A stretch of 36,677 nt of DNA from Macrostomum lignano (Eukaryota). The position numbers and the translations under genes are program-made. Of the stretch, positions 1,539 to 36,655 are shown piece after piece; positions within the stretch are counted from its first letter, which is position 1, and every line of letters begins with the position of its first letter. The notes under the pieces were generated by a model. That model was not told the origin of the DNA. It did not search any database and was given only the letters and a program-made list of their open reading frames with translations. The stretch spans positions 1-36,677 of the forward strand of contig NIVC01004732.1 of the NCBI GenBank assembly GCA_002269645.1, in the 5' to 3' direction.

Positions 1539-3073
1539 CTTTCGGCCCCCTGGGGGGGGAAGCCTTCGGGCCTCAGGTCTCAGAAATAAATCAATTAGAG
1601 TCCTGGCCCCCCACTCCTGTCAGATGGTCAGCCCCATGGTAGCTTAATCTTGTGGCGAGCAGTCTAGGTCCTATAGCTAAGAGAGGGACAGCGAGAGACA
1701 AGCAGGGAGAATTTCGAAGGTAGAGATCAACTAATCCGCAGACTAAGCTAACTCGCTGCCACCAGCCCGTGCGTCCTGGCTCACCAAACCGGGACTCTCG
1801 AAATCGGGCTTCCGACTAGAGGGGGCTTAGCCTTACCTGCCAACTAGTGTCTTTTTGCTGTCAATCTCGAAGTCATAGCCGATAATAAGAAGGACACTGC
1901 TGGGACTTGATCGCATTGGCAATGCAGGTACAGAGGGGACTTGTGCAGGGGATTCTTGTAGTGGCGAGACTATGGGGTAGCTACATGTACTATTACATTG
2001 CTAAATACGAGGAATTGTACTTTTGGCCTTCAATGCGCCAACCAGCCTCTCCTAGCGCTGATGATAGGCTAACTCGAACATCGGAGACCGCATGATACTT
2101 TACCCGAGCCGCTTGGCTAACCTAGAGTGCACAGAGTACATCTCTGGCGCCGATTCTGCACTATTGGCAATTTCGCTAACTGATTTGATGGATTGATCGA
2201 CTGAGAACTGCCTTGCCATTGGTCCACTGTGACCGGTGCCTACTAGCTTAGCTATTCATCTGAGCCATCGGCGAACAAAGAAATAAAACCGATAAAAATA
2301 ACTGTTAGATTTAACCTTCTCCTTAGATCACTTCACATCTCAGATTGAATTGGAGTTCAGACTACTAGCAGTATTATTGAATGATTTCTGCCTCGATTAC
2401 AGCACTACTGAACAAAATGAGCAAAAGTGTGCGCCTAATCCAGCTACTGAAACAGGGGACAGATAAGGAATCACCCAATCAAGCAAGTCTAGGCAGCCTC
2501 TCACCCAACCAATCAGAATTTCAACAGCCGGAGACCAGGTAATCCACAGTGACCGAATCGGCTTAGTGCTTCGCAGCTGTAGGCTCGGGATGATGCTGAT
2601 GTCACAAACTTCGCAGATAGCTAGCAGGTGATGATCTTTAACCTTGATGTTCGCTGTTGACGACCGGGGGAATTCGTCCTTGATGGTGATGGGGGGTGTC
2701 GCGATCCGGGGATCAAGAGACGACGGTCGGGCTCCGTTAGGCCAAAGTCCTAGGAGGTGGAGCCGAATTCCAGCCAGTTGAGCTCCGAGCGGGCCAAAAA
2801 CGCCGGTTTAAATAGCCGCCAACTGGACCGCAATTTGTTATAATGGAACACCTCGATTCTGATTGGCTGAGCCGATTTGTAATAACGCACGTCGAATTTT
2901 CTGATTGGCTGAGCTTGTTGCCACCCAAATTCACGTGACCGGGAGATCCCATCAGTTCCCTCAGGGTCGTAAAAATATGACGGGTGCGGCCATAAATCAA
3001 TCAAAATCGCAACAAAATGATTTATGACTTTCCGCGTAGAATTGACAAAGACTAATGAAAAAATATACATTAG
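1539..3073 (-). repeat. Left arm of a ~1.55 kb inverted duplication
   Basis: Reverse complement of 3527-5120. About 95% identical by eye over 1561-1740 (9 differences in 180 nt), with arm-specific indels elsewhere. Confidence 0.95.
2807..2938 (-). promoter_or_regulatory. Pol II promoter-like module (E-box, two CCAAT boxes, TATTTAAA), left-arm copy pointing leftward
   Basis: TCACGTGA 2931-2938, ATTGG 2904-2908 and 2862-2866 (42 bp apart), TTTAAATA 2807-2814. Confidence 0.5.
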
Positions 3074-3526
3074 TGATGAGGACGCACTTTTTTCCAAATC
3101 CCGCGCTAGCACATGGGCTCTAAACTTACTTGCCTACTAACAGTGGGCAATGGGCATTTTTATCCGTTTTCTGCGAATTGTCATAGAATCTATACTAGAT
3201 ATAATGTTTGGTCATACTAGTAGTCATAATAACATAGGCGCAGCTTTTTGGGTCATAAATCATTGCTTTCGAAGCTGGTCTGACAGCCACCTGCGCCTCA
3301 CTCAGTGTTGAGACGGGCGCCAGATGGTCTGAGAGGATGCGGGCGGTAGCTTTTTTCTCATCATTTTGACAGGCCATCAAGATTTATGAGGTCAGAGCCT
3401 ATTGTTCGTGTTCACTCAAGCGTGTGACAGCTTTGACAGCTATGCGTTTTACCCCTAAAAGTACTTTGGGATTAGCGATTAGCAATTTCTCTTCATTATC
3501 TTCACTTTCTATTTAATAAGAGCTTT

Positions 3527-5120
3527 CTAATGTATGTTTTTTTAATTAATTTCTGTCAATTCTACGCGAAAAGTCATAAATCATATTGTTGCGATTTTGA
3601 TTGATTTATGGCCGCACCTGTCATGTTTTTACGACCCGAGGGAACTGATAGGATCTCCCGGTCACGTGATTCTGGTAGCAACAAGCTTAGCCAATCAGAA
3701 AATTCGACGCTCATTTTAACAAATCGGCTCAGCCAATCAGAATCGAGGTGTCTCATTATAACAAACTGCGGTCCAGTTGGTGGCTATTTAAACCGGTGTT
3801 TTCGGCCCGCTCGGACTGCATTCCGGGTGCTACCCCTGCAAACCTTCTTGCGACCGGGTGCCACCCTTGGCTCCACCGGCCAGGAATTGACCGACGTTTC
3901 TTGATCCCCGGATCGCGACACCCCCCATCACCATCAAGGACGAATTCCCCGGTCGTCAGCAGCGAACATCAAGGTTAAAGATCATCCATCACCTGCTAGC
4001 CATCAGCGAAGATTGCGACGCCGCAGCAGACAACAGACTAAAAAACCCTGAACAATCGTCACATTTAACAAGCCCCCACTTTGAGAACACTCGGTCTAAT
4101 TAGCATCATCCGGGCCTACAGCTGCGAAGCACTAAGCCGATTCGGTCACTGTGGATTACCTAGTCTCCGGCTGTTGAAATTCTGATTGGTTGGGTGAGAG
4201 GCTGCCTAGACTTGCTTGATTGGGTGATTCCTTATCTGTCCCCTGTTTCAGTAGCTGGATTAGACGCACACTTTTGCTCATTTTGTTCAGTAGTGCTGTA
4301 ATCGAGGCAGAAATCATTCAATAATACTGCTAGTAGTCTGAACTCCAATTCAATCTGAGATGTGAAGTGATCTAAGGAGAAGGTTAAATCTAACAGTTAT
4401 TTTTATCGGTTTTATTTCTTTGTTCGCCGATGGCTCAGATGAATAGCTAAGCTAGTAGGCACCGGTCACAGTGGACCAATGGCAAGGCAGTTCTCAGTCG
4501 ATCAAACTACCAAATCAGTGAGCAAAACTGCCAGAAGTGCAGAATCGGCGCCAGAGATGTACTTTGTGCACTCTAGGTTAGCCAAGCGGCTCGGGTAATG
4601 AATCATGCGGTCTCTGAAGTTCGAGTTAGTCTATCATCAGCGCTAGGAGAGGCTAGTTGGCGCGTTGACGGCCAAAAGTACATATTTTCGTATTTAGCAA
4701 TGTAATAGTACATGTAGCTACCCCATAGTCTCGCCACTGCAAGAATCCCCTGCACAAGTCCCCTCTGTACCTCGGCATCGGCTATGACTTCGAGATTGAC
4801 AGCAAAAAGACACTAGTTGGCAGGTAAGTGCAAAGCCCCCTCTAGTCGGAAGCCCGATTTCGAGAGTCCCGGTTTGGTGAGCCAGGACGCACGGGCTGGT
4901 GGCAGCGAGTTACCTAATCTGCGGATTAACTAATTTCTACCTTCAAAATTCTCCCTGCTTGTCTCTCGCTGTCCCTCTCTTAGCTATAGGACCTAGACTG
5001 CTCGCCACACGATCAAGCTACCACGGGGCTGACCATCTGACAGGAGTGGGGGGCCAGGACTCTAATTGATTTATTTCTGAGACCTGAGGCCCGAAGGTTT
5101 CCCCACAAGGGGGCCGGAAG
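3527..5120 (+). repeat. Right arm of a ~1.55 kb inverted duplication
   Basis: Matches the reverse complement of 1539-3073. It carries a ~78 bp extra segment at ~4022-4100 and lacks ~40 bp present at ~1884-1925. The spacer is 3074-3526. Confidence 0.95.
3662..3792 (+). promoter_or_regulatory. Pol II promoter-like module (E-box, two CCAAT boxes, TATTTAAA), right-arm copy pointing rightward
   Basis: TCACGTGA 3662-3669, TAGCAAC 3676-3682, CCAAT 3691 and 3733, TATTTAAA 3785-3792, in canonical order. Confidence 0.5.
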
Positions 5121-5694: not shown

Positions 5695-6968
5695 TAGGGG
5701 TGTTCGGGATGGCATTTTTTCGGGGTTCGGGTTAACCCCGATCCCGAACATCTTTCGGGAATCCCGAACCCCGTCCCGAACATTTATCGGGAACCCCGAA
5801 CCCCGTCCCGAACCCTAATACCGACCCCGAACCCCGATAACCCGAAGTAAGCAATAGCATGAAATAAAAGTGGTATTGACGGCTTCTTACGACTATTAGC
5901 CTGTTTCAGTTCAACTTAAAGTTAATGTGAAATTAATTTTAGGCAGGTTGCATTTCTTTTGATGTGTGAAACATCATGTGCCTCTTTCTCTGCAGAGATG
6001 GAAGCTATCTTATCAATCAAGAATCAATCTCTCTTTTTCTTAATCTCGTTTACTTAGTCTTTGTTGGCATTGCCATTGATGCACGTTGACGCTAGTAAAC
6101 ACTAAAATAATCTGAATTCTCATGTCATCTAATCTGAATGATCAGACTACCAAGTGATAATAGAATAGAACGCGAGTCACTTTACAGTCTCTGGCTCAAC
6201 GAATATGGCATACAGCTAATCGAATTTATCTCGCAAGAACATTAACTTGCTGAGCGATGAGCTGGAAAGGATGCAGCGTTCCTTGCGCTTTAGAAAACCG
6301 GCAGCACTGAAGGCGCACTCTGTTGGGACAGATGATGCTGGGGCAGTGAGGTGAAGCTTAGCGAGCTCTGCCAGTTCTGGAAGATTAGCGGAGTTCTGCT
6401 TCCAGAATTCGCTGACTGCTACCTGAAAATTCTGCTGCGCTAGACTCCTGTACAGAGAAAGCTGATCAGCTGCTCTGCGCCTCGCTTCCTTCTTCCTCGC
6501 GTCTCCTCTGGCGCCGGAGTTCGATGCACTCGCAGTCGCATTGCACTCCTGAGTGGTAATTCCAGATAATCTGCAGAACTGCAAAAACTTGCATCCAGAG
6601 CTCTCTTCAGTACCCAAAATGACATTATCGTGCATCTCCTCGGTAGCGGCCATTGTATTTGCGCTTCTGGCAGCAGCTGCGGCATCTTGCTCAGAAAGCT
6701 CCTGCTCAAGGCTCCACATGACCTCACGTTAAAAACGAAAAAAGCTAATTCTAATTCATAAGGATTTTTTCGTAGTTCTATGGGAATGCAGAAAATTTGC
6801 GAAACCCCGAAAACCCCGAAATCCCGGTCCAAAATCCCGTCCCGAATCCCGATCCCGAACATTTATCGGGAACCCTGAACCCCATCCCGAACATTCATCG
6901 GGACCCCGAACCCCGACCCCTAATCCCGACCCGAACCCCGACCTAACCCCAAACCCCGAACACCCCTA
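5695..6968 (-). mobile_element. Non-autonomous (internally deleted) hAT DNA transposon, 1274 bp
   Basis: Perfect 14-bp TIR TAGGGGTGTTCGGG / CCCGAACACCCCTA, perfect 8-bp TSD ATTGGAGG (5687-5694 and 6969-6976), and many CCCCGAA subterminal repeats at both ends. Confidence 0.95.
6216..6719 (-). pseudogene. hAT transposase C-terminal dimerization domain remnant
   Basis: FWKQNSANLPELAELAKLHLTAPASSVPTECAFSAAG...R..L....LSKLMFL matches the hATC pattern, with the usual ER in SERxFS reading EC. The catalytic N-terminal part is absent. Confidence 0.9.
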
Positions 6969-7055: not shown

Positions 7056-8000
7056 CTCCCAAAGGTGCTCCGTGCGTACAACGTGCCAGAGCAGCTGATT
7101 TCGCCATCATGGCGACGTACCGTGATACGAAAGCTGCTTTTTCAACACCGGACGGCCTATCGGTTGAGACATCCTCCGGGGTGCTTCAGGGAGATACGCT
7201 TGCGCCATTCCTGTTCGTTCTGGTGCTTGACTGGGTGCTGCGGACCGCTCTTCCTACCAACTACGACGGCTTTCTGTTGCTGCGACGCGTGGGTCGACGT
7301 CAACCGGAGAGGCGACTCAGTGTGCTTGGCTACGCCGACGATCTCGCCCTGCTCTCCTTAACTGTCGAGGGCGCCCAGCGACAACTGGACAAGCTAGTTG
7401 CTGTTGCGGCGAGTGTCGGCCTGGTGGTTAACACGCAGAAGACTGGCGTGCTCTGTGTGCCGGACGACATCGAGGCTGCGATTTTGTACCGAGGCGCTGA
7501 TGGACAGGCGACAAAACTTCTGCGTTGTCAGCAGTTCGTCTACCTCCGCGGTCTGGTTCCCGGCGTTCACGAGGATTTGCGGCGTCGCCGCGGGCTTGCC
7601 TGGGCTGCCTTTCGTTCTGTGAGGGCAGTCCTGCAGTCCGAGGCGTTACCTGACCGCCAGAGGGCGGCGTTGTTCTAGGCGGTGATCGAGACCGTTCTGC
7701 TGTACAACGCCGAGACCTGGACGCTGACGAGTCGTCGAGCAACAAGTTGACGGGGTGCATGCTGGCCTGCTGCGCGCCGCCTTTAAGATCGGCTACGAGC
7801 GAGTGACCAACGCGGCTTTGTATCACCGCGCCGGCCTGGTCTGTCCAAGCAACCTGTTGGCGACTCCAGCTGGCAGGCCACATCATCCGCGCCGAGTCGT
7901 ACTGCTCTCAGCCGGTGCAGGTGCTGCTGCTGACACTGCAGGCACGCTACCGGCGGGGGCAGGCGTGCACTCGGCGTTTCGTCGACTGCCTACTGGCTGA
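7056..8000 (+). pseudogene. Reverse transcriptase remnant (RTE clade)
   Basis: GVLQGDTLAPFLFVLVLD and GYADDLALLS motifs, followed by VIETVLLYNAETWTLT after an in-frame TAG at 7676-7678. There is a frameshift near 7100. Confidence 0.92.
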
Positions 8001-10071: not shown

Positions 10072-11865
10072 CGCCTAAAAGCTGGAATTTTGACTTGAAA
10101 ATTATGTTTTAGAATGTAGTAGATATTTAGTCTATGTGCTGTTTGGTCGGTTTGGAGTTAAATGTATGCACACTTAATTATAAAAAAATACATAGAAATT
10201 TGGACAGTTATGAGTTAGGCCTAGAGAGTAAATCTTTGGTTTCCCTCTCGCTCCCCAGCCCCCATCCCGCTCACTCACCTCCCTCTTGTAATGCTATTTT
10301 TTATTTCTTCCTTATTGATTTGATAACTTCTGACTACAGTCGTTTACATTGAGCTTTCGTTTGTTTCATCGATCAAATATACCCTGACTAAGCCTTACCC
10401 ATACCCTTAGGCCCTAGTCTAAGGCCTACTGGCATTGTGGGTTGAAAGAAACACTTTTTTTCGCGTTTAATGTTGATTTAAGCTTTATCTAAGACCTATT
10501 CATTGTATTGATTGAGCGTGCAACTCTAGCAAGAGTTGTTTGTCTTTATTTTACTATAGGGGCCTACTTTGTATTTGTCCTTTATAGGCCTACACACCTA
10601 ACTTTGTCTTTATTCTACCTTTTTTTCTTATAGGACCTAAATGTAAAAGTCAAGAGACAAAATAGACACTTAAATGAATTAGAAAGCTATCTTAAAAATT
10701 ATTTTTTTTCTAGAGCCTACTTTGTTTCATTCTTAGACTTAAGTTTGAAATTAGGTAGGCCTAGGGACAGGGCCTATTTATAACTATGGTAAACATTTAA
10801 GAGTAAAAAATAAGCTTGCTGTCTAGGCCTAATATTTCAGTTTAAATGTAAATAAAAGCCTTAATAAATTAAGGATCTTAGGCTCATTCATAAAAGAAGA
10901 CCTAAAGATAAAGGGTAAAACTTTTTTTAATACTTTGGCAAAAATTTGCTTTGACCTTAGGCCTATAACATTGTTATTTTTCTAGGTCTAGGAGTACTGC
11001 TCAGGGCTCATGAGTCATGATATTATAAACTTCAAAACTAAAATAGCCTATCTAAAGCCTATTTATATTGCTTATTCTAGTTTTAGAACTAGATCCAATT
11101 TGTAAAGTATAACTTTTTGTTCCTTAAACTAGAAGGATATAAGTGCTTAAAGTTGTGATTATAATTATTGAATGGTAATAGCCAAGAATAAAGTGAAAAA
11201 TTGTGCAAAGTGAAGCTGTTAAAGTAGTCAAATATTCAGCAAAGTTAAATAGTTATATAGTTTTTTTTTCTTGGAAGATCCAAATTGATTATGGTTCTAG
11301 AATGGGCAATGTGAAAAGCCCCCTAGTCTTAAGAATTTAAACTAAAAACTTTTAAAATATATATTATTGAATAACTCAACTTTTATTGTTGGTATAGGTC
11401 CAGTTCTATATCTTATTTCAAACTTATTTTATATATTTAATTATTATTAAAAGCCTAACAATATTAAATAATTATAGGCTAAAAAAATAATAAAGAAAAG
11501 GCAAGGCCAATGTTAATATAAAAGCCTAGACCCCCTATATATTGCATTAGATTTTAGACCTACCCTGGGTGATAAAAGTTCTTTTTTATTTAATTTTATC
11601 TATTATTAAAATATTTCATTAAATTCAAATCTACTTGGAAAATGGCTGTGACATTTTGGCAAAAAATATATTAGTAAATATAAATAAGCCCAATAAAAAC
11701 TTTAAAACAAAGAGAAGGTTTAATTAAAAAAACTTGCAAAATTTATATCAACTTGGCCTAGAATATATTAAGCCAAAAATATAGGGCCTATTAAGGGCCT
11801 ATATATTATAAATAAAAAGTAGTCATTTTTATTGTCTAAAATGAAATGTAATCATTGATTATATA

Positions 11866-12114
11866 CATACATGCACAACCCCCCTGATTTACACTGGCCA
11901 TGCAACTTACTTCTTGACCAAAAATGCAACTTACCTATAAAAGAAACCCTAATGCAATTTTGGGTAAACAGCAGGAGTAACTATAACTGTCTTATAAGGG
12001 CTAAATGCCTCATTATCTAATTAGTACATCTATTTAGGCTGGGCATTTTTGCGACTTACCATTGGTCCACCAAAATTTACAGTGGCCAGGTCGGCCAGCA
12101 GTTGCGCATGTATG
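11866..12114. mobile_element. hAT-type MITE (249 bp) carrying a 28S rDNA fragment
   Basis: 14-bp TIR CATACATGCACAAC / GTTGCGCATGTATG (13/14 match) and 8-bp TSD ATTATATA (11858-11865, 12115-12122). Subterminal repeats are GC(A/G)ACTTAC x3 and TTTACA(C/G)TGGCCA x2. Confidence 0.85.
11962..12025 (+). pseudogene. Decayed 28S rRNA fragment spanning the R2 retrotransposon / I-PpoI target site
   Basis: 52/64 ungapped identity to the conserved eukaryotic LSU sequence as recalled, GGGTAAACGGCGGGAGTAACTATGACTCTCTTAAGGTAGCCAAATGCCTCGTCATCTAATTAGT. Confidence 0.88.
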
Positions 12115-12382
12115 ATTATATATTATATAAGATAAAAAAATTTTCCTATCTCTATTTAATATGTTTTCTTTCTAGAAAATTGTCTTTGAAAATTATATTA
12201 TCTAAAGATATTGCATTTTATTTTAACAACTAGAAATATGTATAACAAAATTATTCTAATAAATCATAGAAACAAAAATTAAAAGCAAAACATTGTTGAC
12301 AAAGTAGAAAAGAAAGTTTTTCAGTGCAATTTAAATATGATTATACAAAAAACTATCTTTAAATAAGTTTAATGGAAATATA

Positions 12383-13123: not shown

Positions 13124-14776
13124 CATAGCATTTCAGCAATTCCCTTCTGTGAGCCTTGAAATCCCAGCAATTCTCTCTATAAATCATAGCATTTCAGCAA
13201 TTCCCTTCTGTGAGCCTTGAAATCCCAGCAATTCTCTCTATACATCATAGCACTTCAGCAATTCCCTTCTGTGAGCCTTGAAATCCCAACAATTCTCTCT
13301 ATAAATCATAGCATTTCAGCAATTCCCTTCTGTGAGCCTCCCTATTGGAATAAATGTTAAAAACCCGCGGACGCGCGCTTTAGAAAAGAGTCAAACTATT
13401 TTACCGCGCTTTAGGATTATTAGAGATGTTCCGAAAGATCTGCAGTTTCGTCGAAATCAAAATTCGCTAACTTTCCAAAATCAAAATCAAAATTTCCCGA
13501 AATCAAATTCAGAAAAACAAAGTTTAGTATGATCAACACTCACTTTTTTACTTTCAATTTACTGCTTAAGCAAAAAGAAATACATGTATATGTAGTAGAA
13601 AGTAGTTTATTTTTAGCGACTTTTTAGACACTACCAAAATTTTCACTTCTAAATTTTATTTCGAAATTGAAATTCGCTCTAAAAAATTTCAAATTTTGGA
13701 AAATTGAAATTGAATTTTCGGAACATCTCTAAGCTTAATAAATTACGAGTGTATAAGCCCCTTCAACAGAGGTATTATACCCATTTCCATGTATATGTAT
13801 TTGCTAGAGCAGCAGCCAGTAAGAAAGGGCAGCGCACGCAGGCGCTGCGCCTGTGCGCGCGCTGCGCTTTAGAAAAATTTCAAAAGTGCGCCGGACACCG
13901 TCCGCGGTTTTACAACTTTTTCCTATAGGGGTGAGCCTTGAAATCCCAACAATTCTCTCTATAAATCATAGCATTTCAGCAATTCCCTTCTGTGAGCCTT
14001 GAAATCCCAACAATTCTCTCTATACATCATAGCATTTCAGCAATTCCCTTCTGTGAGCCTTGAAATCCCAACAATTCTCTCTATAAATCATAGCATTTCA
14101 GCAATTCCCTTCTGTGAGCCTTGAAATCCCAACAATTCTCTCTATAAATCATAGCATTTCAGCAATTCCCTTCTGTGAGCCTTGAAATCCCAACAATTCT
14201 CTCTATAAATCATAGCATTTCAGCAATTCCCTTCTGTGAGCCTTGAAATCCCAACAATTCTCTCTATACATCATAGCATTTCAGCAATTCCCTTCTGTGA
14301 GCCTTGAAATCCCAACAATTCTCTCTATACATCATAGCATTTCAGCAATTCCCTTCTGTGAGCCTTGAAATCCCAACAATTCTCTCTATAAATCATAGCA
14401 TTTCAGCAATTCCCTTCTGTGAGCCTTGAAATCCCAACAATTCTCTCTATAAATCATAGCATTTCAGCAATTCCCTTCTGTGAGCCTTGAAATCCCAACA
14501 ATTCTCTCTATAAATCATAGCATTTCAGCAATTCCCTTCTGTGAGCCTTGAAATCCCAACAATTCTCTCTATAAATCATAGCATTTCAGCAATTCCCTTC
14601 TGTGAGCCTTGAAATCCCAACAATTCTCTCTATACATCATAGCACTTCAGCAATTCCCTTCTGTGAGCCTTGAAATCCCAACAATTCTCTCTATACATCA
14701 TAGCATTTCAGCAATTCCCTTCTGTGAGCCTTGAAATCCCAACAATTCTCTCTATAAATCATAGCACTTCAGCAAT
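13124..14776. repeat. 61-bp minisatellite (~17 copies), split by a MITE
   Basis: Unit ATAAATCATAGCATTTCAGCAATTCCCTTCTGTGAGCCTTGAAATCCCAACAATTCTCTCT. About 3.5 copies lie before 13340 and about 14 after 13930. Confidence 0.97.
13340..13930. mobile_element. Non-autonomous DNA transposon (591 bp) inserted in the 61-bp array
   Basis: Imperfect TIR CCCTATTGGAA...CCGCGGACG / CGTCCGCGG...TTCCTATAGGG and perfect 8-bp TSD GTGAGCCT (13332-13339, 13931-13938). Confidence 0.9.
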
Positions 14777-14937: not shown

Positions 14938-15042
14938 ATGTCGAAAGCAGCTACAAGGCGGCGTGGTCCAAAGCAGAGGACGCAGAGATACACTAGCAAT
15001 GTGTTCAGCATGTTCACCGAACAGTCAGTGCAGGAGTTCAAG
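14938..15042 (+). CDS. MRLC: Myosin II regulatory light chain, coding exon 1
   Basis: MSKAATRRRGPKQRTQRYTSNVFSMFTEQSVQEFK followed by a GT donor at 15043 (phase 0). Contains the RxTSNVF phospho-motif of non-muscle/smooth-type RLCs. Confidence 0.93.
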
Positions 15043-15389
15043 GTAGAATTGTTTAACAAGCAATCTTGCACTGCATCTGTGCCTCTCTGTGCCCCATCAC
15101 CTGCCACCACGCACTCACTGTGACAGTTGGCACTGGAATCCTTTACAATTATCGTCCGCATTGTTCGGCTGAAATTGCTTAGCTTTCTAATATAAGCAGG
15201 CCAGTGGACGGAAGTCGTAAAGGGTTCTATCGCTGTCTTAGCATCGTGTCCCACCTTTTCACTATCTAAGCGACCCGGATTTTAATGCTGTCTTTGTACA
15301 AATATTTTTGTTGTCATTATTTGTTGTTTTCGTTGTTTAGAGTTGAATTTTGTATGGCAGCTGCTGGTCAATAAATATCTACTATCGCA

Positions 15390-15805
15390 GATTGAGAATA
15401 GAGATTCCATTATTGTATATTAGGGATAGAAATCCAATTATAGAGGATTAGGGATAGAAATCCTATTATAGAGGATTAGGAATAGAGATTCCACTGTTGA
15501 GGATTAGAGATAAAAATCCCATTATAGAGGATTAAGGATAGAAATCCCATTGTTGAGGATTAAGGATCGGAATCCCATTGTTGAGGATTAGGGATAGAAA
15601 TCTCATTATTGAGGATTAGGAATAGAGATTCTATTATAGAGGATTAGGGATAGAAATCTCATTATTGAAGATTAGTGATAGAAATTCCATTGTTGAGGAT
15701 AAGGGGTAGAAATCTCAATATTGAGGATTAGAGGTAGAGATCCCATTTCTGAGGATTTGGAATAGAGATTCCATTATAGAGGATTAGAGATAGAAATCCC
15801 ATTAG
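15390..15805. repeat. 28-bp intronic minisatellite (~15 degenerate copies)
   Basis: Unit ~AGAGGATTAGGGATAGAAATCCCATTAT, containing the internal hairpin GGGAT-AGAA-ATCCC. Confidence 0.92.
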
Positions 15806-15904
15806 AGAATTAATGATATAGATACATTGGTCAAAAGGTGTGGGATCTAGATATCGAAGGTCTATCTCCAATAAAATATTTGCTCCCTACCCGTAATCGC
15901 CCAG

Positions 15905-16324
15905 GAGGCATTCAACATGATCGACACGAACAAGGACGGCGTGATCGACAGCGAGGATCTGTCCGAGATGCTGGTCTCTCTCGGCCGCGACGAAGCCGGC
16001 CTGCAGCCATACGTGGAAAGAATGCTGGCGGAGGCCCCTGGCCCCATCAATTTCACCATGTTCCTCACTCTGTTCGGCGAGAAAATGTCCGGCAGCGACC
16101 CGGAGGAGACAATTCGAAATGCGTTTGCTTGCTTCGATCCGGAAGGAACTGGCGTCATCTCCGAGGAGCAGCTGCGCGAGATGCTCACCACTATGGGCGA
16201 CAGGTGGACTGACGAGCAGGTCGACGAACTGCTGCACGGCGCCCCGGTTCGCGACGGCCGATTCGACTATGCCGAGTTTGCGCGCACGATCAAGCACGGC
16301 AAGAAGGAGGAGGGCTATAATTAG
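15905..16324 (+). CDS. MRLC: Myosin II regulatory light chain, coding exon 2 (spliced protein 174 aa)
   Basis: CCAG acceptor at 15901-15904, then [19 protein letters not shown] (EF-hand loop)...[18 protein letters not shown]...FDYAEF..IKHG, ending at a TAG stop. Confidence 0.95.
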
Positions 16325-16362: not shown

Positions 16363-16836
16363 GTTGCCATGGTTACACAATACTTGATTTAGTAATTATA
16401 TTTTTGTCAGTAAACATAGCATAAGCATGACGCATGTTATTAATTTCTCATTAGGCTAAGCCCATATATGCGCAACCTTGGGCCAATCACCCAGCCATTG
16501 GCTGAGAGCAGTCACGTGACTATTCTGTCCAATAGCGACTTACATGTGTGTGTTGCCAATAGAAACGTCCGGGTGATTGCGCCCAAGCATGTAAGGCTAT
16601 ACAATAAAATTTATTGAATATTTATTAAACTTTCATGTACTGGCAAGCTGCTTTACAAAATAAAAATGAAGAGAAACCGAAATTACTTTCGATTTGTCCG
16701 AACAATTCATCTCCTCAAATGTTTCAATGAAGCATACTCGTAGCAACCACCAACCATGTTTGTTTAAAGTGCTTGGCAGTTGCTGTGGTTGTGATGGTTA
16801 AACAATAATAAGTATTGCTTTGTTGCTATTGGCAAC
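16363..16836. promoter_or_regulatory. Cluster of three palindromic RFX X-box-like sites with an E-box and CCAAT boxes
   Basis: GTTGCCATGGTTAC 16363-16376, GTTGCCAATAGAAAC 16552-16566, GTTGCTATTGGCAAC 16822-16836. GTCACGTGAC 16511-16520 and CCAAT at 16483, 16529 and 16556. Confidence 0.55.
16477..16587. repeat. Short inverted repeat, possibly a degenerate MITE
   Basis: CTTGGGCCAATCACCCAG (16477-16494) versus CCGGGTGATTGCGCCCAAG (16569-16587). No clear TSD. Confidence 0.45.
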
Positions 16837-17792: not shown

Positions 17793-18357
17793 TGTTGAGA
17801 GTCGCAATGTCACTATTCTTGTTGAGAATCGCAATGTCACTATTCTTGTTGAGAATCGCAATGTCACTATTCTTGTTGAGAATCGCAATGTCACTATTCT
17901 TGTTGAGAATCGCAATGTCACTATTCTTGTTGAGAATCGCAATGTCACTATTCTTGTTGAGAATCGCAATGTCACTATTCTTGTTGAGAATCGCAATGTC
18001 ACTATTCTTGTTGAGAATCGCAATGTCACTGTCTTGTTAAGAATCGCAATGTCACTCTCTTGTTAAGAATCGCAATGTCACTATTCTTGTTAAGAATCGC
18101 AATGTCACTTTTTTGTTAAGAATCGCAATGTCACTTTTTTGTTAAGAATCACAATGTCACTCTCTTGTTAAGAATCGCAATGTCACTCTCTTGTGAAGAA
18201 TCACAATGTCACTATTCCTGTTAAGAATCGCAATGTCACTCTCTTTTAAAGAATCGCAATGTCACTCTCTTTTTAAGAATCGCAATGTAACTCTCTTGTT
18301 AAGAATCGCAATGGCACTCTGTTGTTAAGAATCGCAATGGCACTGTCTTGTTAAGAA
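17793..18357. repeat. 27-bp minisatellite (~21 copies)
   Basis: Unit GAGAATCGCAATGTCACTATTCTTGTT, homogeneous at the left and degenerating to the right. Confidence 0.97.
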
Positions 18358-20244: not shown

Positions 20245-20930
20245 TGGTCTGTGTGTCTGTCTGTTTGTCTGTCTGTCTTTTTGTTTGTTTGTCTCTGCTT
20301 TTGTCTGTCTGTCTGTCTGTCTTAGTGTCTGCTTGCCTGTCTGTCTCTCTGTCTGCTGTCTATCTTAGTGTCTGTCTTTTCGTTTTTGTCTGTCTGTCTC
20401 TCTGTCTGTCTCTCTGTCTGTCTGTCTGTCTTTTTGTTTGTTTGTTTGTTTGTCTGTCTGTCTGTCTGTCTGTCTTAATATCTGACTTAGTGTCTGTCTG
20501 TCCGTCTGACTTAGTGTCTGTCTGTCTGTGTCTGACTTAGTGTCTGTCTGTCCGACTGTCTTAGTGTCTGTCTGTCCGTCTGACTTTGTGTCTGCCTGTC
20601 CGACTGTCTTAGTGTCTGTCTGTCCGTCTGACTTAGTGTCTGTCTGTCCGACTGTCTTAGTGTCTGTCTGTCCGACTGTCTTAGTGTCTGTCTGTCCGTC
20701 TGACTTTGTGTCTGTCTGTCCGTCTGACTTTGTGTCTGCCTGTCCGACTGTCTTAGTGTCTGTCTGTCCGTCTGTCTTAGTGTCTGTCTGTCCGACTGTC
20801 TTAGTGTCTGTCTGTCCGTCTGACTTTGTGTCTGTCTGTCCGTCTGACTTTGTGTCTGCCTGTCCGACTGTCTTAGTGTCTGCCTGTCCGACTGTCTTAG
20901 TGTCTGTCTGTCTGTCTGTGTCTGCCGTCT
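20245..20930. repeat. (CTGT)n-derived array with 24-bp higher-order units
   Basis: Simple TCTG repeat to ~20480, then units such as TCTGACTTAGTGTCTGTCTGTCCG / ACTGTCTTAGTGTCTGTCTGTCCG. Confidence 0.93.
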
Positions 20931-21958: not shown

Positions 21959-22037
21959 GTTTGTTTATTTTGGATGATTATTGATTTATAACCACTTACT
22001 GAAGTCTAGGCAAGAGTCTCCACTTGACTGATAATCT

Positions 22038-23225
22038 CACTGAGAATCGCCCCCACCCCAATCAGAATCGCTCCATCCCACTGAGAATCGCCCCCACCCC
22101 AATGAGAATCGCCCCATCCCAGTAAGAATCGCTCCCATCCCTCCATCCCACTGAGAATCGCCCCCACCCCAATGAGAATCGCCCCATCCCAGTAAGAATC
22201 GCTCCCATCCCAATGAGAATCGCCCCCACCCCAATGAGAATCGCCCCATCCCAGTAAGAATCGCTCCCATCCCAATGAGAATCGCCCCCACCCCAATGAA
22301 ATTCGCCCCAACCCAGTAAGAATCGCTCCCATCCCAATGAGAATCGCCCCCATCCCAATGAGAATCGCCCCCATTCCAATGAGAATCGCCCCCATTCCAA
22401 TGAGAATCGCTCTCATCCCAGTAAGAATCGCTCCCATCCCAATGAGAATCGCTCCCATCCCAATGAGAATCGCCCCATCCCAGTAAGAATCGCTCCCATC
22501 CCAGTAAGAATCGCTCCCATCCCAATGAGAATCGCTCCCATCCCAATGAGAATCGCTCCCATCCCAATGAGAATCGTCCCATCCCAGTAAGAATCGCTCC
22601 CATCCCAGTAAGAATCGCTCCCATCCCAATGAGAATCGCCCCCATTCCAATGAGAATCGCTCCCATCCCAATGAGAATCGCTCCCATCCCACTGAGAATC
22701 GCCCCCACCCCAATGAGAATCGCCCCCATTCCAATGAGAATCGCTCCCATCCCAATGAGAATCGCCCCCATCCCAATGAGAATCGCCCCATCCCAGTAAG
22801 AATCGCTCCCATCCCAGTAAGAATCGCTCCCATCCCAGTAAGAATCGCTCCCATTCCAATGAGAATCGCTCCCATCCCAATGAGAATCGCTCCCATCCCA
22901 ATGAGAATCGCTCCCATTCCAATGAGAATCGCTCCCATCCCAATGAGAATCGCTCCCATCCCAATGAGAATCGCCCCCATTCCAATGAGAATCGCTCCCA
23001 TCCCAATGAGAATCGCTCCCATCCCAATGAGAATCGCCCCCATCCCAACGAGACGGTCCCATCCCAATGAGAATCGCTCCCATTTCAATAATAATCGCTC
23101 CCATTCCGATGAGAATCGCTCCCATTCCAATGAGAATCGCTCCCATCCCAATGAGAATCGCCCCCATCCCAATGAGAATCGCCCCCATCCCAATGAGAAT
23201 CGCCCCCACCCCAATGAGAACCGCC
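22038..23225. repeat. 20-21-bp C-rich intronic minisatellite (~56 copies)
   Basis: Unit GAGAATCGC(C/T)CCCATCCCAAT and variants. Confidence 0.97.
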
Positions 23226-23289
23226 TCTACCCGAAAAACAAAGTCTTGAACCGGAGCCGTATACCATATTATCATGGCATCCCGTCCAG

Positions 23290-23691
23290 GTATTCATAGT
23301 GGTCCTTGGCGCCGGGCTCATCATACTGGTCCTGCTAGCCTTGGACAGCGTATTTCGCAGGCAACGAATCGCCTGCATGCGCCGCTGCTGCAAGGCGCCG
23401 GCGCCGAGTCCGAGACACGCCGGCATCGGCCTCGGCGGCGCCGGCGGCGGCGGCGGCATCGTCTACGACTTTGACGGCGCCGCGGACGAGTTGCTCAACC
23501 CTACAGGCGATCCCGGCGGCGCCGCCGTAGCCTTCGCCGCTCCGTCGTCAAATTCGCGGCATCGCGGCGGCAAAACAGGCGGCAGAGCGCCGCACGGTCG
23601 GGATGCGGTGACGCCGCCGCTGGAAGAGGTCTCAACCACCCTGCCGCCGTCCTACGCCTCCTGCATGCACCCTGAGAGAACGGATTTGTGA
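23290..23691 (+). CDS. Single-pass membrane protein with PPSY motif, last exon (spliced 233 aa from ATG 21659)
   Basis: Acceptor GTCCAG/ at 23289. TM helix VFIVVLGAGLIILVLLAL, then a basic and Cys juxtamembrane segment RRQRIACMRRCCK, then C-terminal LPPSYASC and a TGA stop. Phase matches the upstream exon. Confidence 0.78.
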   Translation, partial: VFIVVLGAGLIILVLLALDSVFRRQRIACMRRCCKAPAPSPRHAGIGLGGAGGGGGIVYDFDGAADELLNPTGDPGGAAVAFAAPSSNSRHRGGKTGGRAPHGRDAVTPPLEEVSTTLPPSYASCMHPERTDL

Positions 23692-23843
23692 ATGCGTAGC
23701 CGCCCGCTGGATGTTGCTACTGCTTTCGCCCGTCTTCTTCCGCCGCGAAATGTGTGCTTCGCTATTATTCATTCGACGAATATACTTAAAATTGGAATAG
23801 TCTGCCTTTCGCGCTACCAGAAAATTGCTTCTTCATACCTCTT

Positions 23844-24615
23844 GAACCGCCCCATCCCTATCAAGAATCGCCCCATCCCAATCAAGAATCGCCCCATCCA
23901 AATCAAGAATCGCCCCATCCCAATCAAGAATCGCCCCATCCCAATCAAGAATCGCCCCATCCCATCCAAGAATCGCCCCATCCCATCCAAGAATTGCCCC
24001 ATCCCAATCAAGAATCGCCCCATCCCATCCAAGAATCGCCCCATCCCAATCAAGAATCGCCCCATCCCATCCAAGAATTGCCCCATCCCAATCAAGAATC
24101 GCCCCATCCCATCCAAGAATTGCCCCATCCCAATCAAGAATCGCCCCATCCAAATCAAGAATCGCCCCATCCCAATCAAGAATCGCCCCATCCCATCCAA
24201 GAATCGCCCCATCCCAATCAAGAATCGCCCCATCCAAATCAAGAATCGCCCCATCCCAATCAAGAATCGCCCATCCCATCCAAGAATCGCCCCATCCCAA
24301 TCAAGAATCGCCCCATCCCATCCAAGAATTGCCCCATCCCAATCAAGAATCGCCCCATCCAAATCAAGAATCGCCCCATCCCAATCAAGAATCGCCCCAT
24401 CCAAATCAAGAATCGCCCCATCCCAATCAAGAATCGCCCCATCCCATCCAAGAATCGCCCCATCCCAATCAAGAATCGCCCCATCCCAATCAAGAATCGC
24501 CCCATCCCATCCAAGAATCGCCCCATCCCAATCAAGAATCGCCCCATCCCAATCAAGAATCGCCCCATCCCATCCAAGAATCGCCCCATCCCAATCAAGA
24601 ATCGCCCCATCCCAT
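23844..24615. repeat. 21-bp C-rich minisatellite (~37 copies)
   Basis: Unit AAGAATCGCCCCATCCCAATC / ...CCCATCC, a sibling of the 22038-23225 unit. Confidence 0.97.
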
Positions 24616-26213: not shown

Positions 26214-26782
26214 CCGCTCTAATTAGGGTTTTTCAACTATTTGCAACGAGTTCGAATAAAAAATCCACTCATCCAGCAGCATTCTCGGCAGCAGAAAGAT
26301 GTCGCAATTTTTCTCTTTTCTTTCTGCATTTTGAACTGAATTCTCAGAAAATCTAAGCTTAATTGGTTCAGCTCGAATCTTGTGTCCGTTTAACCCTCGC
26401 CCTCGTATTCTGTCTCAAATTCTCTGTTGGGCAGTTAAATTAAAATGCGAGGTAATTTGACTCCATTTCAGTAATTAGGTTTGCCTTGTGGCAGAAAAAT
26501 ATCGATAATTCTCTTTAATCAGTGTAGCGTTACCCCCTCTCAGTCTGCTGCTCTGGCCTTTTTGGAATCCGATTACGGTTACAGATGCTCATTATAAGAC
26601 TTACTAAACACTGCGGGCAAATCTCGGTGGGCAATTTTTGTGCTTCCCTTCAATGTGGGTTAATCTTATAGAGTGGATTAATCTAATCTAGTTGGGAGTA
26701 GATCAATCTCATCTTAGTTGAGAGTAGATCAATCTCATCTGGTTGAGAGTAGATCGATCTGTGGTCAGGTGAGGTTGAAATG

Positions 26783-27249
26783 CCGAGCATCAGACCGATC
26801 AGGGGAGGCTGAGACGCCAAGCATCAGGGGGTCAGGGGAGGCTGAGATACCAAGCATCAGGGGGGTCAGGGGAGGCTGAGACGCCAAGCATCAGGGGTCA
26901 GGGGAGGCTGAGATACCAAGCATCAGGGGGGGGTCAGGGGAGGCTAAGATACCAAGCATCAGGGGGGTCAGAGGAGGCTGAGATACCAAGCATCAGGGGG
27001 GGGTCAGGGGAGGCTGAGATACCAAGCATCAGGGGGGTCAGGGGAGGCTGAGATACCAAGCATCAGGGGGGTCAGGGGAGGCTGAGATACCAAGCATCAG
27101 GGGGGTCAGGGGAGGCTGAGATACCAAGCATCAGGGAGGTCAGGGGAGGCTGAGATACCAAGCATCAGGGGGGTCAGGGGAGGCTAGACGCCAAGCATCA
27201 GGGGGGTCAGGGGAGGCTAGACGCCAAGCATCAGGGGGTCAGGAGAGGT
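26783..27249. repeat. ~34-bp G-rich minisatellite (~14 copies)
   Basis: Unit CCAAGCATCAGGGGGGTCAGGGGAGGCTGAGATA with variable G-run length. Confidence 0.95.
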
Positions 27250-27572: not shown

Positions 27573-27762
27573 GCAAACAGAGCTGGATAGAGGGTGGGGG
27601 GACAGACAGGGGAGTGGGAGAAGTTCATGGCCCAAGTGTACTCTCGCGAGCTCATGCGCGGGTACACAATATTCCTTGAAAAGCCAGACAGAACTGAGCC
27701 TAATCTCTCTGATCCGCTCCGCTCGTAGGCGAATATTTTCAAACTTTCTAAGAAGAAAAATC

Positions 27763-27947
27763 ATGGCCGATCTAAAGTCGAGCTTTGTCGCTTTCTGCGA
27801 CGCCACAAAGAAAGGTTCGGACAAGGCTAGCGACAAAACTATTAAGAAGATCTTCACGGATTGCGGCGTTTTCAAAGCGCTCAAGTTGACTTCGAATGAC
27901 ATGGACATCTCGGTGTCCTCATTTAAGGGCAAGGAGAAGATCAAAGG
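27763..27947 (+). CDS. TPPP: Tubulin polymerization-promoting protein (p25alpha family), exon 1
   Basis: MADLKSSFVAFCD...KIFTDCGV...TSNDMDI..SFKGK, with a phase-2 donor GG/GTAATG at 27948. Confidence 0.88.
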
Positions 27948-28026
27948 GTAATGGGAAATAATTGACACTATGAATTCCTTAGAATTCAGAATAATTGAGT
28001 CTGAATAAAATGTTCTACCAATGCAG

Positions 28027-29817: not shown

Positions 29818-30205
<388 letters not shown>

Positions 30206-30823: not shown

Positions 30824-31278
30824 GTGAAGCTTAGAGCTGGTGAAGCTTAGAGCTGGTGAAGCTTAGAGCTGGTGAAGCTTAGAGCTGGTGAAGTTTTGAG
30901 CTTGTGAAGTTTTGAGCTGGTGAAGTTTTGAGCTGGTGAAGCTTAGAGCTGGTGAAGCTTAGAGCTGGTGAAGCTTAGAGCTGGTGAAGCTTTGAGCTGA
31001 TGAAGCTTAGAGCTGGTGCTTAGTGGGTGAAGCTTTGAGCTGGTTAAGATTTGAGCTTGTAAAATTTTAAGCTTTTGAACTTGTGAAGTCTCGTGCTTGT
31101 GAAGTCTCGTGCTTGTGAAGTCTCGTGCTTGTGAAGTCTCGTGCTTGTGAAGTCTCGTGCTTGTGAAGTCTCGTGCTTGTGAAGTCTCGTGCTTGTGAAG
31201 TCTCGTGCTTGTGAAGTCTCGTGCTTGCGAAGTCTCGTGCTTGTGAAGTCTCGTGCTTGTGAAGTCTCGTGCTTGTGA
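30824..31278. repeat. Two adjacent related 16-bp arrays
   Basis: GTGAAGCTTAGAGCTG units (30824-~31080), then GTGAAGTCTCGTGCTT units (31081-31278). Confidence 0.93.
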
Positions 31279-31313
31279 AAGTGACTGGGAAGAGCTGGAC
31301 CGAGTCAGCTTAC

Positions 31314-31708
31314 CACACACGGCGTCCGTATTTCATATCTGTCAATCGCTAACTGGACTTTTCCTTCGCAACTCGAGCGGCAAACTAGCTGAACCCAATT
31401 GCCGCCTGCGGCTGTCGCGTCCTGATTGTGTTTGTCTTCACGGCGGCGCGGCCAATTTCGGAAACAATTTGCCTTCACGTGTGGCCACCGATTGACGGAA
31501 TTGGTTTTGAAGCTGCTTGGGCACCCAATCAGCGAGCTCAGCAGCGCCGAGTCCCCATCTGTGGACTCCGGCTGACAACAGTGCAAATCTGGTTGGCTCG
31601 CTGCCTGGTTTCCAACCCACCTCCCCTTCGGCCAGTGCTTCCCAGCCTTCAAAATCGACACCGGACTGGGAGGATTAGAGAGGCTGCTACCAAACCCAGT
31701 CGACCTAC
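31314..31708 (-). CDS. Candidate internal exon of an unidentified minus-strand gene
   Basis: Open frame bounded by acceptor GATTTTAG/ (31709) and donor GTG/GTAAGC (31313), flanked by satellites on both sides. No recognisable domain, and a competing plus-strand ORF exists. Confidence 0.35.
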
Positions 31709-31835
31709 CTAAAATCAGTTTTTGCTTTATTGAAGCGCAAACTCGAGCAAGGAAACTCAAAGGTAAGATAGTTGCTTAACTTGTTTATCTCTCTGTGTTG
31801 TCTTTCGGTGAGAGAACTTCCACTAGAGTGAGTAG

Positions 31836-32690
31836 TGCATGAAATCGGGTGGGGGTTGCATGAAATCGGATGGGGTTGCATGAAATCGGGGGGGGTTGCA
31901 TGAAATCGGGTGGGGTTGCATGAAATCGGGTGGGGGTTGCATGAAATCGGGTTTGGCTGCATGAAATCCGGTTTGGCTGCATGAAATCGGGTGGGGGTTG
32001 CATGAAATCGGGTGGGGTTGCACGAAATCGGTGAGGGTTGCATGAAATCGGTGGGAGGTTGCATGAAATCGGTGGGTGGGAGGTGCATGAAATCGGGTGG
32101 GGTTGCATGAAATCGGGTGGGGGTTGCACGAAATCGGGTGGGGGTTGCATGAAATCGGGTGGAGGTTGCATGAAATCGGGTGGGAGGTTGCATGAAATCG
32201 GGTGTGGGTTGCATGAAATCGGGTGGGTTGCATGAAATCGGTTTGGCTGCATAAAATCGCGGTAGGCTGCATGAAATCGGGTAGGCTGCATGAAATCGAG
32301 TGGGGCTGCATGAAATCGGGTAGGCTGCCATGAAATCGGGTAGGCTGCATGAAATCGGGTGGGTTGCATGAAATGGTAGGCTGCATGAAATCGGGTGGTG
32401 GGTTGCATGAAATCGGGTGGGGTGCATGAAATCGGTGGGGGGTTGCATGAAATCGGTGGGGTTGCATGAAATCGGGTGGGGGTTGCATGAAATCGGGTGG
32501 GGGTTGCATGAAATCGGGTGGGGGTTGCATGAAATCGGGTGGGTTGCATGAAATCGAGTGGGGGCTGCATGAAATCGGGTGGGTTGCATGAAATCGGTGG
32601 AAGGTTGCATGAAATCGGGTGGGGCTGCATGAAAGCGGGTGGGGCTGCATGAAAGCGGGTGGGGCTGCATGAAACCGGGTGGGGTTGGCA
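31836..32690. repeat. 20-22-bp G-rich minisatellite (~41 copies)
   Basis: Unit TGCATGAAATCGGGTGGGGGT and variants. Confidence 0.96.
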
Positions 32691-33556: not shown

Positions 33557-34003
33557 ACATGTAGAGACACATGCAGAGACACATGCAGAGACACATGAGA
33601 CACATCAGAGACATACTTGTAGAGACGTATATAGAGAGACATGTAAAGACACATGGAGAGAGACGTGTAGAGACACATTGCAGAGACACATGCAGAGAAA
33701 CATGTAGAGACACATGTAGAGACACATTGCAGAGACACATGTAGAGACACATGCAGAGACACATGCAGAGACACATGTAGAGACACATCCAGAGACACAT
33801 GCAGAGACACATGTAGAGACACATGTAGAGACACATGCAGAGAAACATGTAGAGACACATGTAGAGACACATGCAGAGACACATGTAGAGACACATGTAG
33901 AGACACATGCAGAGACACATGCAGAGACACATGTAGAGACACATGTAGAGACACATGTAAGACACATGTAAAGACACATGTAAAGACACATGTACAGACA
34001 CAT
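33557..34003. repeat. 12-bp minisatellite (~37 copies)
   Basis: Unit AGAGACACATG(T/C). Confidence 0.95.
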
Positions 34004-35373: not shown

Positions 35374-35709
35374 TCGAGCTTGAAAACCTGCCAGAGGCCA
35401 TCCGAACGGGAGCTGCTGTAACCTGTTGCCTCTCTCCCTGTATCACTCCTGTTCCCCTCCTCAGCTTCTCGGTATGAAAAGGAGAAATCATTTGAAAATA
35501 TAATAAACGAATAAATACCAAGTGGAAGCAGACCAACTGCTAAGCTCTGTGGCTGGCGTAACAGCAAATCAAATAAATCTCTGCTTTTGAAACTCATTAA
35601 TTGGCCATGCTATGCAGACACGGTGCGTGCAGTCGGCTTTTGACCTGTGTTGCTCTTTCTGCTTGCCTGTTATTACTATTTATTGCAAGTTGCTTTCTCT
35701 ACGATCACC

Positions 35710-36085
35710 CTCAGGTCACACTCAGGTCACACTCAGGTCACACTCAGGTCACACTCAGGTCACACTCAGGTCACACTCAGGTCACACTCAGGTCACACTC
35801 AGGTCACACTCAGGTCACACTCAGGTCACACTCAGGTCACACTCAGGTCACACTCAGGTCACACTCAGGTCACACTCAGGTCACACTCAGGTCACACTCA
35901 GGTCACACTCTGGTCACACTCAGGTCAACCTCAGGTCACACTCAGGTCACACTCAGGTCACACTCAGGTCACACTCAGGTCACACTCAGGTCACACTCAG
36001 GTCACACTCTGGTCACACTCAGGTCAACCTCAGGTCACACTCAGGTCACACTCTGGTCACACTCAGGTCAACCTCAGGTCAACCT
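35710..36085. repeat. 11-bp minisatellite (~34 copies)
   Basis: Unit CAGGTCACACT. Confidence 0.97.
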
Positions 36086-36119
36086 TAGCTAGGTCATCTC
36101 GGATCAACCTCCAGTTCTC

Positions 36120-36655
36120 GCTAGGCACCTTCTAGTCACTCTCTAGGCACCTCTAGTCACTCTCTAGGCACACTCTAGTCACTCTCTAGGCACACTCTAG
36201 TCACTCTCTAGGCACACTCTAGTCACTCTCTAGGCACACTCTAGTCAATCTCTAGGCAACCTCTAGTCACTCTCTAAGCACATTCTAGTCACTCTCTAGG
36301 CAACTCTAGTCACTCTCTAGGCACACTCTAGTCACTCTCTAGGCACACTCTAGTCACTCTCTAGGCACATTCTAGTGCCACTCTTTAGGCACATTCTAGT
36401 CACTCTCTAGGCACATTCTAGTCACTCTCTAGGCTTATTCCAGTCACTCTCTAGTCACTCTCTAGGCACATTCTAGTCAATCGACAGGTGCCCTCTAGTC
36501 ACTTGTTAGGTCACTCTCTAGTCACACCCTTTCACTCGTTAGATGCCCTCTAGTCACTCTCTAGTAAGACTCTAGTCACTCGACGGGTGCCCTCTAGTCG
36601 CTCTCTAATCCTCTCGTCACTCGTTAGGTCACTCTCAAATCACTCTCTAGTCACA
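36120..36655. repeat. 22-bp minisatellite degenerating toward the window end
   Basis: Unit CTAGTCACTCTCTAGGCACACT, made of two related 11-mers. Confidence 0.9.

Follow-up and report, generated by a model that had tools for sequence, protein, structure and literature searches.

The stretch of Macrostomum lignano DNA considered here raises the question of whether a short DNA transposon has captured the segment of the 28S rRNA gene that contains the R2 and I-PpoI target sites, and whether it carries that target, still intact, outside the rDNA. The window, by which we mean the whole 36.7-kb stretch that was analysed, contains an ORF (15917-16324) with 100% identity to the UniRef myosin regulatory light chain (MRLC) protein of M. 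lignano, a free-living flatworm. The element that holds the 28S-like sequence sits in AT-rich intergenic DNA (GC 0.27-0.33), at a distance of 2.8 kb from the MRLC gene and on its upstream side. The rest of the window is crowded with minisatellite arrays and transposon debris.

Reading of the sequence together with a repeat finder confirmed every coordinate of the 249-bp element in the original prediction, with its 14-bp terminal inverted repeats (TIRs) and 8-bp target-site duplication (TSD) (table 1). A structure scan of the window for 14-nt inverted repeats (one mismatch or fewer) flanked by 8-bp direct repeats free of mismatches, at a spacing of 60-800 bp, returned two candidates, the 249-bp element and one artefact, and no TIR plus TSD structure arose when the surrounding 3 kb were shuffled 3000 times. 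The second return, at 2931-3669, was rejected as a palindromic 8-mer, TCACGTGA, within a long inverted repeat, with no insertion. That inverted repeat is a large foldback-like structure in its own right (2630-3986), with arms of about 430 bp (2630-3063 vs 3538-3986) that are 90-98% complementary and a spacer of about 470 bp.

The element has stop codons in all six reading frames, and its concatenated six-frame translation has no protein relatives among 5.8 billion proteins. In size (249 bp, below about 800 bp), in its want of coding capacity and in its combination of TIRs and TSD it has the properties of a MITE, and it is a MITE-like class II insertion with TIRs and an 8-bp TSD. Each arm holds a subterminal unit of about 40 bp, of the form ATTTAnnCTGGnCA..TGCrACTTAC..ACCAAAA, followed by a partial copy of itself; the likeness between the left unit (11887-11923) and the right unit (12032-12075) is significant at p=0.008 (3000 shuffles). 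Subterminal repeats are transposase-binding sites in hAT elements, where they are bound by BED domains (PMC10368747), and the direct-repeat units of the present element are its likely transposase-binding sites.

Table 1. Positions, in the window, of the 28S-bearing element and its parts, of another element that shares its terminus, and of neighbouring features
Feature	Position	Strand	Remarks
Left TSD copy, 8 bp, ATTATATA	11858-11865	.	Identical to 12115-12122
Element body	11866-12114		249 bp, non-coding
Left TIR, CATACATGCACAAC	11866-11879	+	13/14 complementary to 12101-12114
Left subterminal repeat unit, ATTTACACTGGCCATGCAACTTAC..ACCAAAA	11887-11923	+	Direct-repeat similarity to 12032-12075
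Partial second copy of left subterminal unit, ATGCAACTTACC	11924-11935		
28S (LSU) rDNA-derived fragment, 64 bp	11962-12025	+	Spans R2 / I-PpoI site region
Right subterminal repeat unit	12032-12075	+	Direct orientation vs left unit
Partial copy of right subterminal unit, ATTTACAGTGGCCA	12075-12088		
Right TIR, reverse complement CATACATGCGCAAC	12101-12114	-	13/14 vs left TIR
Right TSD copy, 8 bp, ATTATATA	12115-12122	.	Identical to 11858-11865
MRLC gene, two exons within window	14938-15057 and 15902-16324		
Second inverted-repeat element, left terminus CATATATGCGCAAC	16463-16595	+	133 bp
Minisatellite arrays (1)	13124-14776, 15398-15804, 17793-18357, 20247-20919, 22034-24614		
Minisatellite arrays (2)	26763-27248, 29819-30205, 30824-32687, 33557-34003, 35705-36654		

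The pattern of the terminal 14-mer, CATAYATGCRCAAC, has a third exact occurrence in the window, at 16463, where by our own arithmetic about 1e-3 extra matches would be expected by chance. This third match caps another inverted-repeat element, which indicates a family of elements with the CATAYATGCRCAAC terminus. The second element starts about 140 bp past the stop codon of the MRLC gene. Between its two ends there is agreement at 22/24 positions, with two indels, and the sequences on either side of it, GCTAAGCC and GCTATACA, which may be a decayed 8-bp duplication, agree at 5/8. It has no LSU/28S similarity. The evidence for a multi-copy family thus consists of one further element with the same 14-nt terminus, found within the window.

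The original prediction called the element a hAT-type MITE. Its MITE-like character and 8-bp TSD stood, and the hAT assignment, for which the length of the TSD is the one ground, was not supported. The terminal consensus of hAT elements is YARNG, to which the CATAC that begins both termini of the present element is a misfit, and P-like elements likewise make 8-bp duplications. The element also differs from hAT-superfamily MITEs in the fit of its TSD to the hAT target, at one of two positions, and in that no transposase with the element's ends was seen in the window. It resembles them in its 8-bp TSD, short TIRs and subterminal repeats (PMC10368747), and the window does hold a hAT remnant. As regards the target, hAT/Hermes elements make an 8-bp TSD with a preference for nTnnnnAn (PMC10368747); ATTATATA has T at both position 2 and position 7, and the opposite strand, TATATAAT, has A at both, a fit at one of the two constrained positions on either strand. 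On these features of the sequence we do not file the element as hAT, and we infer that it was mobilised by a transposase producing 8-bp duplications, whether hAT-like or P-like.

The hAT remnant just mentioned is an ORF at 6216-6719 (-) with a hAT C-terminal dimerisation domain, Dimer_Tnp_hAT (PF05699; E=3.5e-11). It is what is left of a transposase, cut off upstream by other sequence, and the window has no second remnant of the hAT kind. The presence of this dimerisation domain shows that the M. lignano genome is home to hAT elements; no CATAYATGC terminus was found near it.

The centre of the element was compared with full eukaryotic LSU genes, which we had recovered as contaminants in prokaryotic assemblies by means of a 36-mer around the R2 site. 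Two of them, L001 and L017, were verified by Rfam as complete LSU_rRNA_eukarya (3210 and 2856 bits). When the whole window was aligned by blastn with the L001 LSU, positions 11962-12025 aligned to LSU 2212-2275 at 56/66 positions with two 2-nt gaps (E=7e-12), a significant match where the lack of one would have told against the original prediction. This is the sole significant LSU match in the 36.7 kb, all other blastn matches having E of about 1 or more. The predicted ungapped identity of 52/64 was reproduced exactly with a consensus built from 65 distinct LSU sequences, and the local score of the fragment was 45, against a best of 22 among 200 shuffles of the element. Rfam reported no LSU match in the whole window at the gathering threshold, nor in 11700-12300 at E up to 10; we used blastn against Rfam-verified LSU genes because the covariance model misses an internal fragment as short as 64 nt. 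Neither Rfam nor blastn found further rDNA within the window, in agreement with the prediction that no other rDNA lies nearby.

The borders of the 28S fragment are sharp in extension tests on both sides. Upstream, the weaker similarity that had been proposed back to AAGAAA at 11941 is not significant against shuffles (p=0.30), and neither is 28S homology downstream of 12025 (p=0.99). Escherichia coli 23S rRNA matches the fragment over merely 32 nt (E=0.9), so that the source is a nuclear eukaryotic LSU gene and a bacterial or organellar origin can be rejected; a chance likeness to 28S is rejected by the E value of 7e-12. The fragment has decayed by seven substitutions (7/62, 11% diverged), of which six are G:C to A:T and three lie at CpG, together with a TA insertion and a TA deletion. 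Taken together, these comparisons show that the centre of the element derives from the R2/I-PpoI region of nuclear 28S rDNA.

What the fragment carries at the target itself is a broken site. The published R2 substrate reads ...GACTCTCTTAAGG^TAGCCAAATGCC..., where ^ marks the bottom-strand nick, and the nick site AAGG^TAGC has the intact form ...CTCTTAAGG^TAGCCAAATGCC... (PMC13000458). The I-PpoI site is the 15-mer CTCTCTTAAGGTAGC (PMC2034468, PMC2602781). At this place the present copy reads CTGTCTTATAAGGGCTA. Around the nick the element has AACTGTCTTATAAGG^GCTAAATGCC (in shorter form CTGTCTTATAAGG^GCTAAATGCC), and CTCTCTTAAGG^TAGCC in 28S has become CTGTCTTATAAGG^GCTAA, a TA having been gained within TTAA and a TA lost directly 3' of the nick, after AAGG. 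No match to the I-PpoI 15-mer was found anywhere in the window at three or fewer mismatches. The prediction that the element has the R2/I-PpoI target as cargo is borne out insofar as the fragment spans the site region, and fails in that the TA insertion and TA deletion break the site.

Both indels of the fragment fall inside the 15-bp I-PpoI/R2 site (11995-12003), and the other 49 bp carry substitutions only. This clustering, which is not statistically compelling, could reflect one complex mutation or a repair scar. It is also the case that the indels lie exactly on the R2/I-PpoI site, which could hint at past cleavage and repair instead of random decay.

We consider it probable that the element is a copy of a non-autonomous cut-and-paste transposon (MITE) in which the 28S piece is repair filler and now an inert passenger. 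Internally deleted DNA transposons arise via interrupted gap repair, and such repair is known to patch in filler DNA from other places. On this model the 64-bp piece would have been copied from a 28S rRNA gene of the host itself and acquired as filler by template switching or end-joining capture during double-strand-break repair, either in an ancestor element or in the present copy; filler capture of this sort would be the same process as gives rise to non-autonomous elements with internal deletions. Few templates in the nucleus are as abundant as rDNA, which its high copy number makes a likely donor of filler. The MITE would have inserted into AT-rich intergenic DNA upstream of the MRLC gene, duplicating 8 bp of its target, and the captured piece would have decayed neutrally, with nearly all changes G:C to A:T and with a minor rearrangement where R2 and I-PpoI cut. 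We read the piece as an inert passenger because it breaks the array of repeat units, ends abruptly and has decayed with the spectrum that neutral sequence in an AT-rich genome should show. The presence of rDNA modules within transposons is a recognised outcome of modular reshuffling (PMC10946416).

An alternative that we regard as unlikely is that the MITE arrived without rDNA and that the 64-bp 28S piece was patched in later at this locus and never mobilised. The sharp borders by which the 28S piece breaks the array of direct-repeat units agree with such a local patch, and the related element at 16463-16595 is without the piece. On the other side, the core (7/62 plus two indels) appears more diverged than the TSD and TIRs (1/22), which mildly favours capture before insertion. 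The comparison of the TSD and TIRs, with one difference in 22 paired positions, and the core, 11% diverged, gives p ~0.04 under a uniform rate and p ~0.16 when limited to G/C positions, and it is not decisive because the TSD consists of A/T alone and only G/C sites have decayed; to this extent it also agrees with late patching. The same figures weakly suggest, from the sequence, that the core may be older than the present insertion.

The original prediction had gone further and proposed that the MITE family, if it had amplified the 28S R2/I-PpoI target, would scatter landing pads or decoys for R2, or give rise to rRNA-matching small RNAs. We find such a target-carrying, amplified family very unlikely, despite several observations that agree with it. 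Both the element and the 28S core within it are genuine, the terminus occurs again in the window, as would be expected of a TIR family, both indels of the core lie on the cleavage site, and a non-LTR reverse-transcriptase fragment, with R2 proteins as its nearest solved relatives, lies 4 kb off. R2 elements moreover occur in flatworms (Platyhelminthes), and some of these have lost their specificity for the 28S target (PMC5035012). Against this, the site is broken in the present copy, and single substitutions at several positions of the site already impair cleavage by I-PpoI (PMC2034468). The other element with the same terminus (16463-16595) is without the core, and no further copy was found in the metagenome, viral or protein collections searched: the metagenome scan gave no TIR pair at MITE spacing, the metagenome and viral scans gave no example of the element's variant core, and the viral scan gave none of the true 28S sequence. 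Small RNAs matching rRNA are also unlikely to come from this copy because the fragment and 28S agree exactly over no more than 11 nt in a row, which is too little for perfect targeting by small RNAs. Dispersed intact R2 targets find no support in the evidence at hand.

Related to this is the scenario, to which we likewise attach very little probability, that the MITE family gained its 28S target early and then amplified, and that younger copies or the family consensus have intact R2 sites outside the rDNA. The indels at the cleavage site of the present copy would then be scars of cleavage and repair. One copy was examined as a sample of core-bearing copies, and both family-wide carriage of the core and an intact site in the family consensus are compatible with that single copy.

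That the locus holds no transposon, and instead a stray rDNA fragment at a break whose TIR and TSD are fortuitous or were produced by microhomology-mediated repair, is scarcely credible: according to work cited in a review (PMC10946416) animal genomes commonly contain scattered fragments of rRNA genes, and the TSD is low-complexity A/T in an AT-rich region, but a 13/14 TIR with an 8/8 TSD occurred 0 times in 3000 local shuffles, the identical 14-mer stands at the tip of another inverted-repeat element, and the arms hold repeated subterminal units. A birth within the rDNA, in which a transposon end in or beside a 28S gene mobilised the adjacent 28S sequence in the manner of the rDNA-dwelling Pokey, is highly improbable as well: true 28S has GCGCATGAATG 3 nt past the core, 10/11 like the inner right terminus GCGCATGTATG, but this likeness is not significant (p=0.18, whereby we rejected a 28S-derived right terminus), the 28S piece is central, away from the termini and with non-rDNA repeat units on either side, and no additional rDNA homology was found in the window.

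The preferred reading, a MITE with captured 28S filler, makes the element a new example of a recognised phenomenon and not a new kind of system. A 2024 review of rDNA modules in transposons lists 5S promoters in SINEs and in Cassandra/Ajax, 28S fragments in SINE28, and IGS repeats in the MITEs of Pokey and in Pokey itself (PMC10946416). The table of that review has no class II element with a 28S coding fragment inside it. Our literature searches found none either; in keeping with the original prediction, which knew of no description of such an element, they turned up neither this element nor 28S-carrying MITEs.

Among the closest known systems is Pokey, a piggyBac element of Daphnia, with its MITEs (mPok), which like the present element is class II, contains internal sequence derived from rDNA and concerns the same 28S hot-spot (PMC3849761, PMC10946416 Table 2). 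In Pokey, however, the rDNA part consists of IGS repeats and not of 28S coding sequence, the duplications are TTAA, and the element inserts into the 28S gene, whereas the present element has an 8-bp duplication, occupies an AT-rich intergenic site and has the 28S piece inside it. SINE28 of mammals is similar in that the body of a mobile element includes 28S rRNA gene sequence (PMC10946416); it is a retrotransposon moved by LINE machinery, and the present element is class II by its TIRs and fixed 8-bp duplication.

With Pack-MULE-type transduplication, and with the filler of internally deleted hAT or P elements, the present element shares host DNA between intact ends and a non-autonomous nature; the likeness to gene-capturing transposons lies in the modular reshuffling cited in PMC10946416. 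Its cargo differs from that of the Pack-MULE type in being a 64-bp piece of an rRNA gene and not protein-coding exons. Dispersed pseudogene fragments of rRNA genes are likewise short, decayed LSU pieces outside the array with G:C to A:T decay, but the present piece is enclosed by transposon ends and is not free in the genome.

The element is a small addition to the catalogue of rDNA-carrying transposons. For annotation, elements of this sort give rDNA-like matches outside the array, which are open to misreading as rDNA loci or R2 targets. Should it prove true that genomic copies share an intact R2 site, they would form a natural system of dispersed R2 targets, and such intact sites outside the rDNA could act as landing pads or decoys for site-specific retrotransposons. 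Early amplification, if it took place, may bear on the reported loss of target specificity by flatworm R2 elements.

Some further features of the window may be recorded. The non-LTR reverse-transcriptase fragment lies at 7109-7678 (+) (RVT_1, E=4e-10), outside any 28S context, and its nearest solved structures are the R2 retrotransposon proteins 8gh6 (E=5e-8) and 9nl2. Minisatellite arrays are unusually dense across the window; their repeat units are 4-69 bp long and number up to 57 per array, and the arrays account for most of the long spurious ORFs of the window. Exon 1 of the MRLC gene is directly preceded by a 61-bp array, and the intron of the gene contains one of 28 bp. An ORF at 27676-27951 (+) has a weak match to a p25-alpha (TPPP) domain (E=1e-4) and is probably an exon of a neighbouring gene.

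The collection of LSU references also brought to light contamination in public prokaryotic genomes, in that more than 120 assemblies with bacterial or archaeal labels include contigs with eukaryotic rDNA. L001 itself carries a complete 18S-5.8S-28S unit inside a 'Nitrosomonadales MAG'.
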